Shown in pieces: positions 39,800 to 51,700 of a stretch of 64,000 nt of DNA (position 1 is its first letter; each line of letters opens with the position of its first letter). The DNA lies in assembly GCA_002269645.1 (NCBI GenBank), contig NIVC01001381.1, positions 62,001 through 126,000 on the forward strand, in the 5' to 3' direction. Position numbers and translations under genes: made by a program. The DNA is from Macrostomum lignano (lineage: Eukaryota). The notes under the pieces are model-generated. The model was not told the DNA's origin and made no database searches. It saw only the letters and a list, made by a program, of their open reading frames with translations.

Positions 39800-42700
39800 T
39801 CAGACAATGCACACCAGGCTGTCCATCCACCTGGCCCAGCCGGTGCCCAGCTCCAGGGTGCGGCACGCCCAGCTCAGCTGACTGCCAGTCTGGTTGGCGA
39901 ACTTCAGCAGCTCGGACACCCCAGCAGCTTTAGCTTCATCAAGCACGAACTTCAGCTGCGACTGTGAGCAGTCGATGAAATCAGCTGCCGGCCTGGCAAA
40001 CAGCTTCATCAGCGTCAGGGAGGTGATGAGAAGACCCTGCACGTCTCTGGCCACGGATTCGCCAAGGGAGGTCAGGCCGGATGTGCGCAGCTGCCGCCCC
40101 CAGCAACTGGCGATGTAGCTGGGCACCGGGATGGCTGCCAGGTTGCTGGCTGACCATTCGATTCGGCCGGTGCTGGTGCTGGACAGCAGCGCTTTGAACT
40201 CCGGAGATTGCCGATGGTCCAGGGTCAGGGCTGCGTGCAGAATAAAATCAAAGTGGGATTTTATAGACAGACAGACAGACAGACAGACAGACAGACAGAC
40301 AGACAGACAGACAGACAGACAGACAGACAGACACTAAGACAGACAGACAGACAGACACTAAGACAGAAGACAGACAGAAAGACAGACAGACAGACAGACA
40401 GACAGACAGACAGACAGACAGACAGACAGACAGACAGACAGACAGACACTAAGACAGACAGACAGACACTAAGACAGACAGACAGACACTAAGACAGACA
40501 GACAGACACTAAGACAGACAGACAGACAGACAGACACTAAGACAGACAGACAGACAGACACTAAGACAGACAGACAGACACTAAGACAGACAGACAGACA
40601 GACAGACAGACAGACAGACAGACAGACAGACAGACAGACAGACAGACAGACAGACAGACAGACAGACAAGACAGACAGACAGACAGACAGACAGACACTA
40701 AGACAGACACACAGACACACAGACAGACAGACACTAAGACAGAAGACAGACAGACAGACAGACAGACAGACAGACAGACAGACAGACAGACAGACAGACA
40801 GACAGACAGACAGACAGACAGACAGACAGATAGACAGACAGACAGACAGACACTAAGACAGACAGACAGACACTAAGACAGACAGACAGACACTAAGACA
40901 GACAGACAGACACTAAGACAGACAGACAGACAGACAGACAGACAGACAGACAGACAGACACTAAGACAGACAGACAGACACAGACAGACAGAGACTGACA
41001 GATAGAGAGAGACTGACAGACAGACAGACAGACAGACAGACAGACAGACAGACAGACAGACAGACAGACAGACAGATACAGACAGACAGACAGACAGACA
41101 GACAGACAGACAGACACTAAGACAGACACACAGACAGACAGACAGACAGACAGACAGACAGACAGACAGACAGACAGACAGACAGACAGACAGGCAGACA
41201 GACAGACAGACAGACAGACAGGCACAGACAGGCAGTACAGGCACTCACGGATACGCCTGGATCCGAACAGCAGCTCATCGAACTCAGCGCCGTCGGTTCG
41301 TTCGGCGCACGTCGCCACCCGGTGCCGGCGGGCGCCAGGCGCATCGTCGCTGTCGCCATCCAGGCAGCGCTGCAGCTGGCGCAAGAACGAACGGAAGCTC
41401 TGCTCATCACGCTCCCTCTTGCTGAGAGCTTGCTTGATAATCTGCAAATAAGGTTTGGTGCCATAAATTATTTAAGACTGGTACCGGACGCCTGCAGTTT
41501 CAGAACAGCAGCACAACACAACAAGACAATACAACAAGACAATACAACAAGACAATACAAGAAACAAAAAACAACGGGCGTTCACCTCCTCGGATGTGCA
41601 CCTTGTCCGACCATCAATCAGTTGCCTTCTACGCCGCGGAATCGGTCCTTCATCGTCATCGGCGTCCCAGTCCGCATCATCCCAGTCTCCGACAGCAACG
41701 CTGACCTCCAGTTTCCCGTTGACATCGACAGACACCCAGGCCGTAATCTGAACATCCGGGTCGTCCTCCGGAATGGGCAGCGTCAGGCGAGTCAATCGCC
41801 GATTGTTCTCAGCGATCGGCGACTCGCCTTCGTAGAAAATGACAGACACGCTGGCCTGCCGCAGCCAGTACGGCGACAGGGCGACCCGGCGACGCAGCGG
41901 GATGGTTTGATTGCGATCGGCGATGGGCAGAAACCGACCGCCGACAATCTCCACGCCGACTGATAGAGGCAGAACGTCTAATAGAAGAAGATCCTGGGCG
42001 GCCGTGTCAGTCGCCGAAGGAGAAGGGCGAGCCTTCTCGCCGAACAGTGACGGCTGGGAAGTTTCTCGACCAGCCTCCCGCCTCATAGCTGTCGGAGCAG
42101 CAGCGGCAGCACCAAAGCCCCGATGCTGAGCAGATGATGCTGCGATCACCCTTGGGGGTGGCGGCGGCTGTTGCTGTTGAGGAGGCGCTGGCTGGGAGCC
42201 AAAAGTCCAACCGTGCTGCTTGCCGCGGCTGGCTCTCTGCATCGCGGGAGCCATGTTGACAGCCTGGCCGAACACAATGGCATCCAGTTCTTGCTTGACC
42301 TGTTCGTTGACAGTAGATCTTGTGCGCTCCTTGTCTTCGACTAAAAATTAATTATAGGAGGAAAAATTGTGGACAAGCCTTTCTAATTAAGAATCATATT
42401 ATATAAGAATCATATTTTTATTTGGATACAAGCGGTCAGACCATGTTTCTTTTTGAGTCTCGAGCCACCGGCCGCGTCCATCAACAGGTTCTCTGCAGAT
42501 TCAGAAGCCGCCGCTCTCAGCTCTGAGTCAGCAGTCGGGGCCGCCCCCTCCGTACTGTATTGACTCTGTTCGTCTTGCCGAACATCTTCGAGAGGTGGAA
42601 AGATGACGGATAGGTGTAGATATGGTGAGGGACAGAGGTAGAGAGGATGAAGGAGAGGTAGAGAGTAGGGAGGGAGGGAGAGAGGTAGAGAGGAGGGAGA

Positions 42701-48700: not shown

Positions 48701-51700
48701 GCGACAATGACCCATATATTAATCAGATAAGCGACAATGACCCATTTATTGATCAGATTAAAAACGATGACCGATTTACTAACCAGATAAGCGACGATGA
48801 CTAATTTAATGACCAGATATGAGCGAATGCCTCATCTAATGATTAACCGTCAGTGATGAATCTAATGACGCTATCGAAGCAGCACTATGACCAATCTAAT
48901 CACTAGATATGAGAAAAAGACAAATTAAAGGACTAATTTAACACAATGACCGCTTCGATGACTGAAAATTAGCAGCTCACCTCCCAGTTTGAGTCCGGCA
49001 GCTTCGCGGCCAACGTAGACATCTTTCTGGCCCATGCCGACCATGACGCCCTGGTGACGAGGCCGGCCAACCACGGTAGGGAAGCTTGCCAAGAGGTTGG
49101 ACCGGTTCGACATCACGGCAGCTTTGGTTAGAAGCGAGCCGGAGTCCAACACCAGAGCCGGTTCGTCATTCCAGGAGTCTTCGTCCCGGTCATTGTCATC
49201 GTCAGATGATTCAGCAGTAGCTGCTGCCAGGAGAGGCATATCTGCAGATAATATTGTAAGCTCTTGCCGGTTATATTTGACATTTGACTCGCTTGACCGA
49301 GGAAGGAGACAGCAGACACAACAGGATTGGAGACAGCAGACACAACAAGATTGGAGACAGCAGACACAACGGGATTGGAGACATCAGACACAACAGGATT
49401 GGAGACGGCAGACACAATAGGATTGGAGACAGCAGACACAACGGGATTGGAGACAGCAGACACAACAGGATTGGAGACGGCAGACACAAAAACAATAGGA
49501 CTGGAGACAGCAGAGACAACAGGATTGGAGACAGCATAGACAACAGGATTGGAGAGAGCAGACACAACCTGATTAGAGACAGCAGACACAACATTGGAGA
49601 CGGCAGACACAATAGGAACAGGTAGCAGAATTAAGCTCAAAGGTTTCCTTCAACTTTTTCTCACGTTTCATTTTTCGCCGTTTCATTTTTTTAGCAGCCT
49701 TGATTGGTTTGGCAGCTGTTTCGGCCTCTGGTGAAGGGCCACGTCCGCCGCGTAGACGCAGCACCAGGTGAACAGTGCAGCCTGGCGTCAGCCCTGCACT
49801 AGCCACAGTCCAATCTGATTCCAACTGCTTTCCGTCAGCAACTAAACGAATCTGATCCACTGGGATGCACTGCCGTTCGTTTATTGCCTTCTTGAGCTCA
49901 AGAATACTTTGATTAGGCGTAAGGCTAACTGTGAACTCTTCGCTAGTGAGCGTTCTCACTTTGACAGTGAATTTAGATGGAAGAGCTGCGGAATGAACAG
50001 GTTATTCCTGTTCAATTTTTTGTCTGAATAAAAAATCTAACAAGCAATAACATCGAAAAAAAATCTCAGACTCACATTTAGCATCAGCTTGCCGCATTTG
50101 TGCGGCTTTCCGATTCTGTTTAACAGACAGCACCACCGGGTGCTTGTCGTGAACGCCGGCCAAAAGCAGCGAAGCTTCCAGATCGTCAAACAGCCGAAGA
50201 GCTTCTTCGCTCTTTCCGGTGTTTGACAACTCCTGACCATCAATGATACCGTCGGCAATTTGCGCGAGAATTTCCGCCTAAAAAAATTTAGACGAGTCAT
50301 TACGAGAGTAACTATCCATATTGAGTTCTATTTAAATGCCGCGTTATTATAAAGTTTACTTTACGAGAAGGAAAAATGCCTCGTCAACTCCTTCCTTATA
50401 GAGGTAAAAAATTGGGACAAATGCCTCGTCATCTAACAAACTCACAAGCCCGTCGCCAGCCTCCTTGATCGGTTCCCAGCCCTGTGTGGCTAAGATATCA
50501 ACCTTCTCGTCGTCTAGCAAAATTTGCAATCGGCCAGTCATGTCCGATTCAAATTTTTCGTCCTGTCAGAAATAGATAGCATTTACAATTAGTATATAAC
50601 AATACCGGTCAGACAAACCTTAGAGATTTAGTATATTGTGAAAGTGTGCTACTATATCATAAGGATAACGATTTCATCTACCTTTTCACGATCCTCAACC
50701 GCTACGAAGCTGGTAAATTGGCAAGCCACTGAGTAGCGAATCGATAATTGAACCAGGTTGGCCTTCTGCTCCAGTCGCTTCAGCTGTAAATTTGATTGGG
50801 TTTGCTAATTTGTCACCTTTGAACTCTCAAATGAGTATACCTATTTTTATAGCTCTCTACCAATACCAGTTTATTGTGAACCTAATACGAGAATAACTTC
50901 AGTGGTGAACGCATCTGACTTTCGCACCAAAGACCCCAGGTTCGATTATGTGCGCGACCGCACATCACGCCAACAACACAAGAGCCAACCACGGGGGTCA
51001 GAACTGCTTGGCTCTTTAAATGACTGCATGTCGCCATGAGTTGCGACAGTTTCTCAAGTCAGAACTTCATTTATATTAAATCATCTTTTCTTAGAAACTC
51101 TCCGATTTAACTCTACCGACTTTTCCGACTTTTTAGTTACCTGATGCAGAGCCGGATCGGTATCCAAGCTGCCAGCCTCCCAGTCGGCAATGAGGCTCCT
51201 AGCAGCCAGGGCGTGCACCATGGAGCCGGTGGTAAAGCATAGCTCGCTAGTGAACACCGTGCAGCTGACTCGACAGTCGCCAGCTTTGGCATGCAGTGTC
51301 GCTCGTTGACATCCGCGACCTTCGCGCGGCATCAAGCCATAGACAATCAAGCGCTGACCGTTGAACAGAGCCGACGGACAAGCAGGCGCTTGGCGCACTA
51401 CAGACAACTCCTGACTGTCACTGTTGTCATCATCGTCGTCAAGATGCCACTCAACGCTGAGCTCGGTAAGCGCCGGCGCGGTGAGCCGAGCAATCAGCTC
51501 GTCGGCCAATGCAGACCATTTTGAACGTCTGGCCGGGTCGAAAAATTCCACGGAACCGCCGGAACCGGCAGCTCCGGCCAGCGATCGGAGCCGGTGCCGG
51601 TCTGGCGAGGGTCCAACCGAGCAGGCCAGCAAACGCAGGTGCTTGTTAGCACCTGAAGCGGCGACAGCCAGTGTAGCCTCTTTCGCTTCGTAGTGTCCGT

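Follow-up and report, generated by a model that had tools for sequence, protein, structure and literature searches.

Vault particles were first described in 1986, and PARP4 (vPARP) is, to our knowledge, the only one of their components long known as an enzyme. The vertebrate protein is arranged in the order BRCT, PARP catalytic domain with an H-Y-E triad, VIT, von Willebrand factor A (vWA), variable linker and, at the C-terminus, the domain that interacts with the major vault protein (MVP-ID). Another vault protein, TEP1, has a TIR-like NADase related to bacterial immunity. The function of the particle itself is called elusive or unknown in recent structural papers. Domain surveys describe the PARP4 linker as disordered, and this disordered linker is the part of the vault that is known to be under positive selection in mammals, where the selection is recurrent and where a host-pathogen interface was proposed in 2014 (PMC4038475). 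Here we describe a PARP4 gene from Macrostomum lignano, a flatworm. The gene occupies the minus strand from about 62.0 to 39.8 kb of a stretch of 64,000 nucleotides (the window; contig NIVC01001381.1, positions 62,001 to 126,000, assembly GCA_002269645.1). Behind a putative BRCT region it shows the vertebrate domain order, with cassette exons between the vWA region and the MVP-ID. Whereas host-protein fragments have not been reported in the vertebrate linker, for which no systematic test was made, the linker of the flatworm gene consists of ubiquitin, actin, P-stalk-like and Hsp70 pieces on symmetric cassette exons.

Two described systems of immunity have a likeness to such a linker. In the integrated decoys of plant NLRs (RRS1-WRKY and the HMA domains of RGA5 and Pik-1) a defence protein has taken in a copy of an effector target, which acts as bait. 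The PARP4 case differs in that the scaffold is a vault ADP-ribosyltransferase, most of the many different baits are linear epitopes or pieces smaller than a domain, placed serially or in alternative exons, and their function is proposed. In the NLRP1 and CARD8 tripwires a disordered and fast-evolving linker of an animal immune protein mimics the sites of pathogen proteases. There, however, the cleavage motifs arose de novo and the output is an inflammasome, while PARP4 imports whole pieces of host proteins.

A preliminary description of this DNA had placed ubiquitin-like, actin, acidic LF(D/E)E and Hsp70 modules inside PARP4 and had read the variable region as a modular bait. All of these modules are indeed found on the minus strand, in frame and where they had been placed, those of ubiquitin, actin and Hsp70 with strong Pfam or PDB scores. 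Their location between the vWA region and the MVP-ID is supported by the exon phases and the open frame, by the match of the last exon to the MVP-ID, and by uninterrupted open reading frames (ORFs) in relatives. The principal new result is the recurrence of such a mosaic of host fragments in other PARP4 genes: fragments of host proteins, in differing sets, appear between vWA and MVP-ID in a snail, in sponges and in metagenome loci. A full-text literature search that included the 40 best-ranked of 212 PARP4 papers of 2024-2026, and whose coverage was incomplete, returned no description of host-protein fragments in PARP4; the closest prior statements are the 2014 proposal of a host-pathogen interface in the mammalian linker (PMC4038475) and the surveys that describe the linker as disordered. 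The features of the flatworm gene are as follows, from the N-terminal end.

60872 to 62041 (approximate limits), minus strand: putative N-terminal BRCT exons; Pfam BRCT E 0.035, which is weak.
55428 to 56882, minus strand: PARP catalytic domain in two exons (56882-56583 and 56036-55428, approximate); Pfam PARP 3.5e-7 and 2e-11.
54443 to 54955, minus strand: VIT domain exon; Pfam VIT 1.2e-32; 54% identity to the PARP4-like protein of the snail Littorina.
51093 to 52973, minus strand: two vWA or ITIH-like exons (52973-52575 and 51860-51093, approximate); Pfam VWA_3 0.011; tblastn with PARP4 orthologs 1e-10 to 1e-35.
50682 to 50783, minus strand: exon e6, which closes the ITIH-like region; phase 0-0; motif TSF(V/I)A(V/I)E, common to all PARP4 orthologs.
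50446 to 50562, minus strand: exon pre1, with a conserved (V/I)D(I/F)L..x.W motif after the ITIH-like region; phase 0-0; upper limit of the region in the preliminary description.
50076 to 50277, minus strand: exon pre2, which encodes a helical linker; phase 0-1; P0004 and P0005, two public models, match it at 100% identity.
49665 to 49985, minus strand: ubiquitin-like (Ubl) exon; phase 1-1; Pfam ubiquitin PF00240 4.4e-17, above cut-off; ends LRLRGG, followed by a Lys-rich tail.
48981 to 49241, minus strand: actin exon, an acidic leader and actin residues ~4-60 with the whole D-loop; phase 1-1; PDB actins E 5e-14.
48204 to 48323, minus strand: X1, Ser/Asp/Glu-rich, part of tandem unit 1; phase 1-1.
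47844 to 47933, minus strand: Y1, an acidic run ending ..YGRSLFEE, P-stalk-tail-like; phase 1-1.
46751 to 46843, minus strand: X2, Ala/Pro-rich then Ser/Asp-rich, like the hinge of a P-protein; phase 1-1.
46406 to 46504, minus strand: Y2, ..SLFDE, the closest putative copy of the P1/P2 tail, SEESDDDMGFGLFD; phase 1-1.
44893 to 44940, minus strand: remnant of a third, dead X exon; donor and downstream intron kept, exon body replaced and acceptor lost.
44510 to 44611, minus strand: Y3, ..LLFDE; phase 1-1; 88% identical to Y2.
42442 to 42585, minus strand: Z exon, starting VRQDEQSQ; phase 1-1; has splice sites, is present in P0001/P0002 and is identical in the paralog.
41586 to 42340, minus strand: FG-rich and Hsp70 exon; phase 1-0; Pfam HSP70 8.6e-14, profile positions 379-483.
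41249 to 41441, minus strand: exon with an Hsp70 lid-like helix and a fourth acidic motif, AEFDELLF; phase 0-1.
39800 to 40230, minus strand: last exon, a helical homolog of the MVP-ID (MINT); phase 1-stop, TGA at 39802-39800.

The first part of this list identifies the gene as an ortholog of PARP4, the ADP-ribosyltransferase of the vault. The part from PARP to vWA is 33-38% identical, with E down to 1e-142, to proteins that NCBI names PARP4 in mammals, fish, frogs and molluscs; the PARP exons are colinear with PARP4 orthologs, and so is the VIT-vWA region with at least 30 of them, placed right behind the catalytic domain. BRCT residues of snail and scallop PARP4 match 62041-61898 and 61090-60890 in tblastn (E 0.004 and 8e-6). 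As read off the translations, the catalytic motifs, REFAVF among them, form an intact H-Y-E triad; the ART domain is apparently active. The motif of pre1 has its counterparts in EDVDFLPYISW of vertebrates and AVDILDYIGW of Littorina, and pre2 fixes the phase for the cassette exons that come after it.

The last exon had been taken for the PARP4 C-terminus from its similarity, and this proved correct at the level of profiles. It is colinear with the MVP-ID; hhalign gives 61% and E 8.2e-5 against a profile of vertebrate and sponge domains, and 81% and E 1.2e-5 over 83 columns against a broader profile to which two metagenome PARP4-type sequences were added. The invariant columns of the joint alignment are W25, G51, S54-L55-G56, T69, L71, L73, A102, L125 and W131. 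At this level we accept homology to the MVP-ID family (PF26156, PARP4_MVP-ID); binding to MVP is predicted. Of the human residues that contact MVP (S1614, K1618, Q1682 and R1689; the domain anchors PARP4 to the vault wall, PMC12280208), S1614, which is the S of SLG, and Q1682 are conserved in the flatworm, and K1618 and R1689 are not. Single-sequence searches were less informative. A phmmer search of 1.84 billion representative sequences with the last exon returned Macrostomum proteins and a single further match, the 4204-aa repeat protein P0052, which is spurious; phmmer against PDB returned nothing even at E 10, and an AF2 model built on a 7-row alignment was all-helical and poor (pLDDT 50.7). 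A side observation concerns a bacterial VIT-vWA protein (L069:3469-6399), the terminal domain of which opens with ..LQRADGSWDLTSELAGVIG.. and so resembles the MVP-ID, whose first residues read ..DGFWKLTPELG.. It may thus be that the PARP4 C-terminal domain is older than its association with the vault. L069 also has a small GTPase, located 5 kb downstream of its VIT match; this was set aside, the contig being bacterial and the GTPase a separate gene.

The cassette modules differ in how well they can be identified. The Ubl exon belongs to the ubiquitin family by its beta-grasp match and C-terminal di-glycine. Compared with PDB ubiquitin it scores a per-domain E of 1e-10 and shares 31/74 residues (42%), and the last nine, HLVLRLRGG, are identical throughout (9/9); L8, Q40, R42, K48, H68 and V70 are kept and I44 is replaced by V. 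Since alignments to eS31 chains do not stop at the GG but enter the basic extension (residues 8-105 of the query on 3-98 of the chain, E 8e-15), the exon was probably derived from a ubiquitin-eS31 (S27a) fusion gene, processing junction included. The reading of the tail as eS31 is soft, because its Lys-rich part is of low complexity. The fusion genes RPS27A/eS31, UBA52/eL40 and FAU/FUBI-eS30 are the described parallel, as the flatworm exon likewise runs from the GG into the eS31 basic extension. Unlike them, PARP4 copies retain the junction and a short tail without the ribosomal protein, and they are internal to a protein of 2000 residues. The Littorina PARP4-like protein has a Ubl at the same position.

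The actin exon holds a fragment of actin and not the complete fold of ~375 residues. Pfam alone scores it weakly (0.02), and tblastn gives 60% identity over 57 aa. In the Hsp70 exon the first 115 residues are FG-rich (WTFG, RGFG, SLFG). The Hsp70 part begins exactly at the interdomain linker, QDLLLLDV, and continues into the beta substrate-binding domain (PDB Hsp70 residues 392-495, E 1e-14, with alignments reaching residue 535 in some chains). The linker is identical at 11/13 positions and identity is much lower beyond it; the fragment as a whole is ~39% identical. It consists of the linker with the beta substrate-binding domain and the first part of the lid, has no nucleotide-binding domain, and is thus not a full Hsp70. 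Neither the Z exon nor the FG stretch has a Pfam match; Z may be related, in degenerate form, to the eEF2 switch-I fragment that is seen in related loci.

The three acidic exons that had been described as P-stalk-like are present; their assignment to the P-stalk from the window itself is only suggestive, a lead and not a result. A Pfam scan of the Y exons gave no match in the window. X2 and Y2 together, run against 177,635 PDB sequences, found a sole match in the C-terminus of human P1, ..EESEESDDDMGFGLFD (P1 residues 69-114, E 0.29), and in tblastn Y2 is 62.5% identical (10/16) to RPLP2 residues 100-115 with E 0.016. What is found in the window mimics the P1/P2 tail (native motif ..SDDDMGFGLFD), the dimerisation domain being absent. 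The type of tail is settled by a relative, the PARP4-like ORF of locus L004, in which the same kind of tail is recognised by Pfam Ribosomal_60s at 4.8e-11. The X-Y pairs themselves are a tandem triplication of an exon-intron-exon unit with introns alignable at 64-74% identity; unit 3 lost its X exon and retained the donor. X1, X2, Z, the FG-rich half, the lid-like exon with its fourth LF motif and the dead third X are additions to the list of modules in the preliminary description. Matches to Pol II CTD in the window (42642-43204, 45841-45900 and 53246-53606) were rejected as CT-rich intronic microsatellites; microsatellites of one kind or another abound in the introns.

Do these exons form one message? 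Exons from 50783 to 39800, with canonical AG/GT sites, join into one frame of 1009 codons. Eight consecutive exons (Ubl, actin, X1, Y1, X2, Y2, Y3 and Z) are of phase 1-1, hence any subset of them could be included without breaking the frame, and three further exons follow. No exon contains an internal stop in the frame that is used. When read in the other frames most exons have several, for example 6 and 7 for Hsp70 (against 0 in the 251 codons of the used frame) and 6 and 8 for the Ubl. Seven short exons are, however, also open in one alternative frame.

It could be argued that the cassette is an illusion of annotation, that is, pseudo-exons or separate transcripts all of which the true PARP4 mRNA skips. 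Indeed the public models split the locus and omit the Ubl exon, and our splice sites were selected to fit the frame: exon limits were placed at the best local AG and GT sites that do so, for which reason the agreement of phases is not an independent test. The chosen sites are, however, mostly among the strongest local candidates. Five do not reach the thresholds of the automated scan; they were set by eye or by analogy of the repeat units, namely the acceptors of the Ubl, actin and lid-like (post) exons and the donors of Y2 and Y3. The public UniProt models also share several junctions with ours. P0004/P0005 run from PARP through vWA, pre1 and pre2, skip the Ubl exon, then join actin, X1, Y1, X2 and Y2, with some spurious extras and a read-through into an intron; P0001/P0002 start in a repeat element, contain Z and Hsp70, then the lid-like and the last exon with the MVP-ID, and are fused to a neighbouring MFS transporter. 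The modules have no start codons of their own, and relatives hold the same arrangement in uninterrupted ORFs. Hence we consider this explanation very improbable. The splicing of the flatworm gene stays inferred all the same, since none of the protein collections searched with the spliced region yielded a transcript-derived protein for it; the best protein matches to that region were all Macrostomum lignano UniRef entries with 74-100% identity.

P0004 and P0002 represent the locus in the window, P0005 and P0001 a second copy in the public Macrostomum lignano proteome. All modules of the second copy are open and intact; the numbers of identical over aligned residues are these.

Actin module: 84/87.
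X1: 38/40.
Y1: 28/29.
X2: 31/31.
Y2: 31/32.
Z: 46/46.
Hsp70: 238/252.
Lid-like exon: 60/64.
MVP-ID: 137/139.

Three copies of a short interspersed repeat lie in the PARP4 introns on the minus strand (45783-45583, 43512-43312 and 43770-43640), and it is in one of these that the public 3' models wrongly begin.

In several of the relatives no splicing has to be inferred: the fragments and the PARP4 domains are encoded in uninterrupted ORFs and so belong to one polypeptide. The metagenome contigs among them were found by a scan with a VIT alignment; a profile search with an alignment of the MVP-ID returned short MVP-ID fragments only and was useless as a census of architectures. Inserted modules were screened by tblastn with a panel of 33 reference proteins, which was used for screening only. 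Matches to actin, 14-3-3, ubiquitin, the P-stalk tail, synaptobrevin, EF-hand/calmodulin and the CTD of L002 were re-checked by Pfam or by reading of the ORFs; the H3-tail, syntaxin-like, L001/L004 CTD and L022 matches come from reading of the ORFs alone.

In the PARP4-like protein of Littorina saxatilis (XP_070191086) the series BRCT-PARP-VIT-vWA is followed by a ubiquitin domain (Pfam 1.7e-24), then ..LRLRGGP.. and an H3-like tail, SRGRTNQTARMSTGGKAPARM. A single ORF of 2006 codons in a metagenome contig (L003:123-6140) reads BRCT, PARP_reg, PARP, VIT, vWA, actin (6-64, 5.6e-12), ..SSEDDMGFGLFD.., polyproline and MVP-ID. Another (L004:1684-7737) has PARP-VIT-vWA, a whole diverged 14-3-3 (1.3e-15), four P-stalk tails (Ribosomal_60s above cut-off) and CTD heptads. 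In L006 the BRCT to vWA part is followed by one in-frame stop and then by ubiquitin (1.2e-20, with the tail LALRGA), two H3-like tails (one of them SRTKQTARMSTGGKAPRK), a P-stalk tail, FG repeats and an MVP-ID-like end. This lone stop, at L006:3630-3632 between the BRCT to vWA ORF and the module ORF, could be a sequencing error, a read-through site or a tiny intron. No poly(A) is visible at the ends of L003, L004 and L006. The ORF in L002 is of PARP4 type and nearly free of introns, and goes on to a fragment of the 14-3-3 C-terminus (1.4e-14), then calmodulin (EF-hand_7 2.9e-16), SNARE-like motifs (assigned by eye; syntaxin tblastn 2e-6), CTD heptads, WH2 and SH2 (4.2e-13).

A locus of glass-sponge type, L001 (4943-22223), is organised in another way. 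The snail protein is the nearest to its constant PARP, VIT and vWA exons (46-61% identity), which are followed by at least 6, probably 7, large alternative 3' exons, like an array of variable exons. Most of these open with the same helical segment, the first one does not, and each of the six that have their 3' end inside the locus closes with a near-identical MVP-ID and a stop. What lies between varies: C-terminal helices of 14-3-3; actin 2-66 with DDDDDDDFGFGLFDD and RRGGKVHGSL, which we take to be the FUBI-eS30 junction; actin with a fragment of the synaptobrevin SNARE motif (Pfam 5.7e-7); or Pol II CTD heptads. P-stalk and eEF2-like stretches are present in these exons too. The closest relatives of this locus, P0128 and P0129, cluster with a Trinity transcript from a glass sponge, Vazella pourtalesii, that covers one such C-terminus, so the C-terminal part is expressed at least in the Vazella pourtalesii group.

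Some further observations were made on these loci. In L022 and its duplicates, actin, synaptobrevin-like, polyproline and WH2-like pieces lie downstream of PARP4-type exons. A (GTCT)n-type microsatellite (SVCLSVCL) is common to L022 (WLWD01000565.1, 10900-11300) and to PARP4 introns of the window (40250-41240 and 56060-56583), and L022 may come from a related flatworm. A fragment RFTDTR(K/L/H)DEQ(E/D)R, presumably resembling the switch-I or Thr56 region of eEF2, recurs in L001 (for example within 10001-12223), L004, L006, P0128 and P0129. In P0011, an ENA protein of 1141 aa, a full actin domain precedes a Deltex C-terminal and a vWA domain; here too a host hub may have been fused with an ADP-ribose-related module.

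Could such a mosaic have accumulated neutrally, by capture of pieces of abundant mRNAs into PARP4 introns or the linker, followed by exonisation and retention as spacer? Several facts invite the question. The donors are without exception highly expressed genes, and no flatworm module is divided by an intron, each being one exon. The X/Y units arose by tandem triplication so recently that their introns can still be aligned, one exon has died, and exon and intron identities between units 1 and 2 are similar. On the other hand, fragments with the same limits (actin ~2-66; the P-stalk tail) recur in the flatworm, in sponges and in at least two further eukaryotes. The Hsp70 exon fragment of 251 codons has no stop or frameshift in either of two copies at ~39% identity. 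Tubulins, eEF1A, cyclophilin, H2A, H2B, H4, cofilin and profilin, which are equally abundant, gave no match in PARP4-type loci in the screen with 33 reference sequences. Further, when actin fragments of four PARP4-type sequences are compared with actin, the D-loop block is invariant while the preceding 30 residues, nearly invariant among real actins, have only three invariant positions. A neutral origin of the whole array is therefore improbable in our opinion. As the D-loop, the ubiquitin tail and the Hsp70 linker are kept while the rest diverged, selection seems to act on short epitopes rather than on folds.

The H3-like tails of two unrelated PARP4-type proteins have K9M (QTARMSTGGKAP; P0012, the Littorina PARP4-like protein, residues ~1320-1345, and L006:4566-4694). 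The ubiquitin copy ends GA in L006, and in Littorina the GG is followed by Pro. Histone tails with K-to-M changes bind, inhibit and trap SET-domain methyltransferases, and a G76A or Ub-Pro junction confers resistance to deubiquitinases. The K9M, GA and GG-P variants accordingly look like pseudo-substrates, judging from these residues. The K9M change is the same as in the K-to-M tails of oncohistones; unlike those, it is naturally encoded in PARP4 and involves no somatic histone mutation, and it is found in the relatives and not in the window.

Many of the donor sites are well known as places where the host is attacked or exploited. The actin D-loop is a site cut by bacterial proteases, the P-stalk tail is the docking site of ribosome-inactivating proteins, the linker of BiP/Hsp70 is the target of a subtilase cytotoxin, and SNARE motifs are the targets of clostridial neurotoxins. 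Q40 and R42 of ubiquitin are the sites of deamidases and SidE-type enzymes; 14-3-3, calmodulin, ubiquitin and actin are cofactors that switch on bacterial toxins. It seems reasonable to propose that the linker is an array of mimics of host targets that serve as baits for foreign proteins, their capture beside the ART domain being the likeliest outcome; our belief in this proposal slightly exceeds our doubt. PARP4 would be held by its C-terminus on the inner vault wall, and its linker would display mimics of the host hubs ubiquitin, actin, P-stalk, Hsp70 and FG. Toxins, effectors and viral proteases that bind, cleave or modify those hubs would be drawn to it. The intruder would most likely be caught next to the intact H-Y-E ADP-ribosyltransferase and then be modified or sequestered; as a second possibility, cleavage of a bait would free the enzymatic body from the vault wall.

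The pieces integrated in the flatworm gene are homologous to host ubiquitin, actin and Hsp70, and relatives show the P-stalk tail. The repertoire varies between the flatworm, the snail, the sponge with its alternative 3' exons in one gene, and L002, L003, L004, L006 and L022. The reading as a modular bait is strengthened by these recurrent sets that vary with lineage, by the conservation of epitopes and by the K9M variants; it is still an inference. One part of it we would word differently. It had been supposed that sensed enzymes activate or release the ADP-ribosyltransferase, while capture followed by ADP-ribosylation or sequestration would suit the modules that cannot be cleaved at least as well. 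We prefer capture with modification because many of the modules are binding hubs or pseudo-substrates. Both outputs would agree with the positive selection in mammals (PMC4038475) and with the link of TEP1 to TIR-like NADases.

The second possibility could also be the whole story. The modules would then be mainly sites for proteases and deubiquitinases, and a cut linker would free the catalytic body from the MVP-ID, the release being the signal, as in NLRP1 and CARD8. GG junctions, the D-loop and SNARE motifs suit cleavage; an intact LRLRGG stands beside the eS31-like tail, the sponge exons have RRGGKVHGSL and, in L001, the synaptobrevin fragment, the Hsp70 fragment starts exactly at the interdomain linker, and the MVP-ID is an anchor to the vault wall (PMC12280208). 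However, many of the recurrent modules bind rather than get cut (14-3-3, calmodulin, SH2, WH2, CTD, FG). The ubiquitin junction looks uncleavable in L006 (LALRGA) and in Littorina (GG-P), H3 K9M is a change of trap type with no cleavage site, and a freed enzyme would remain inside the vault. We consider release as the sole mechanism to be unlikely.

A purely domestic role has to be weighed too. The motifs might recruit the cell's own partners of actin, ubiquitin, P-stalk and Hsp70 to the vault, for loading of cargo or for regulation, and no pathogens would be involved. Conserved interaction epitopes in a disordered linker beside a vault anchor are what such an adaptor would need, and vaults are thought to carry transient cargo (PMC12280208). 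Yet the sets of modules differ strongly among lineages and even among the alternative exons of one sponge gene, which is unexpected for a conserved housekeeping function. The mammalian counterpart is under positive selection (PMC4038475), and pseudo-substrates of the K9M type suggest trapping and not regulated use. Hence we find a housekeeping adaptor quite unlikely, somewhat more so than release as the sole mechanism.

A number of points weigh against the bait array that we prefer. The baits would lie in the lumen of the vault, and access of foreign proteins to it is an assumption. All donors are very abundant, so that RNA-mediated capture of abundant messages could bias the choice of fragments. 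The GG-R junction of the flatworm Ubl looks cleavable by host deubiquitinases, which may constitutively part the enzyme from its anchor. The P-stalk resemblance is statistically weak in the window, and the flatworm motif is internal while the native tail is C-terminal. Between Y2 and Y3 there are ~9-10 non-synonymous and 2 synonymous changes in 33 codons, nearly all in the core of the motif, and with so few sites selection cannot be called; only in this pair of units (U2-U3) is the exon more alike than the introns, at 88% against 74% for the flanking introns. In the MVP-ID, K1618 is replaced by S, and R1689 by T with an Arg one position earlier that is not in register. Finally, the splicing of the flatworm cassette is predicted from genomic sequence, and in the public models the locus is split, the Ubl exon missing and the 3' part run together with the MFS gene.

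This MFS transporter gene lies directly downstream of PARP4 and is tandemly duplicated, with exon copies that are 99-100% identical and ~2.1 kb apart (first exons 38805-37750 and 36685-35900; further exon stretches 37119-36877 and 35070-34180). A large minus-strand neighbour at 26294-11526, ~13 kb from PARP4, encodes an NWD1-like STAND NTPase with the P-loop GCSGSGKTS (Pfam nSTAND1 5.4e-6, NACHT 0.002, NWD1-like winged helix 1.3e-11); its long downstream ORFs may be a beta-propeller. The linkage of an ATPase of innate-immunity type to PARP4 may be a coincidence.

A wider proposal, in which we believe slightly less than we doubt it, is that from protists and sponges to bilaterians the PARP4 linker is a lineage-specific array of mimics, and that the vault would be an ancient innate-immune trap that lures foreign enzymes to a tethered ART beside the NADase of TEP1. 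The putative mimics seen copy ubiquitin junctions, the D-loop of actin, the tail of the P-stalk, the linker of Hsp70, SNARE motifs, the Pol II CTD and an H3 tail that carries K9M, besides 14-3-3 and calmodulin; the array would be diversified by cassette exons or by alternative terminal exons. If true, this would account for the positive selection that acts on this part of the mammalian protein. The principle of integrated decoys, established for plant NLRs, would then hold in animals and protists on a different scaffold, and the lists of modules would be a historical record of the host hubs that pathogens targeted in each lineage. Since RNAi and transgenesis are available for Macrostomum lignano, a laboratory model, the bait reading is testable. 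If the linker is an array of mimics, the purpose of the vault becomes a concrete question, namely which foreign proteins bind or cut each module and how PARP4 responds. If the function holds, PARP4 would represent a new kind of immune device of animals and protists, and the vault would have a testable role.

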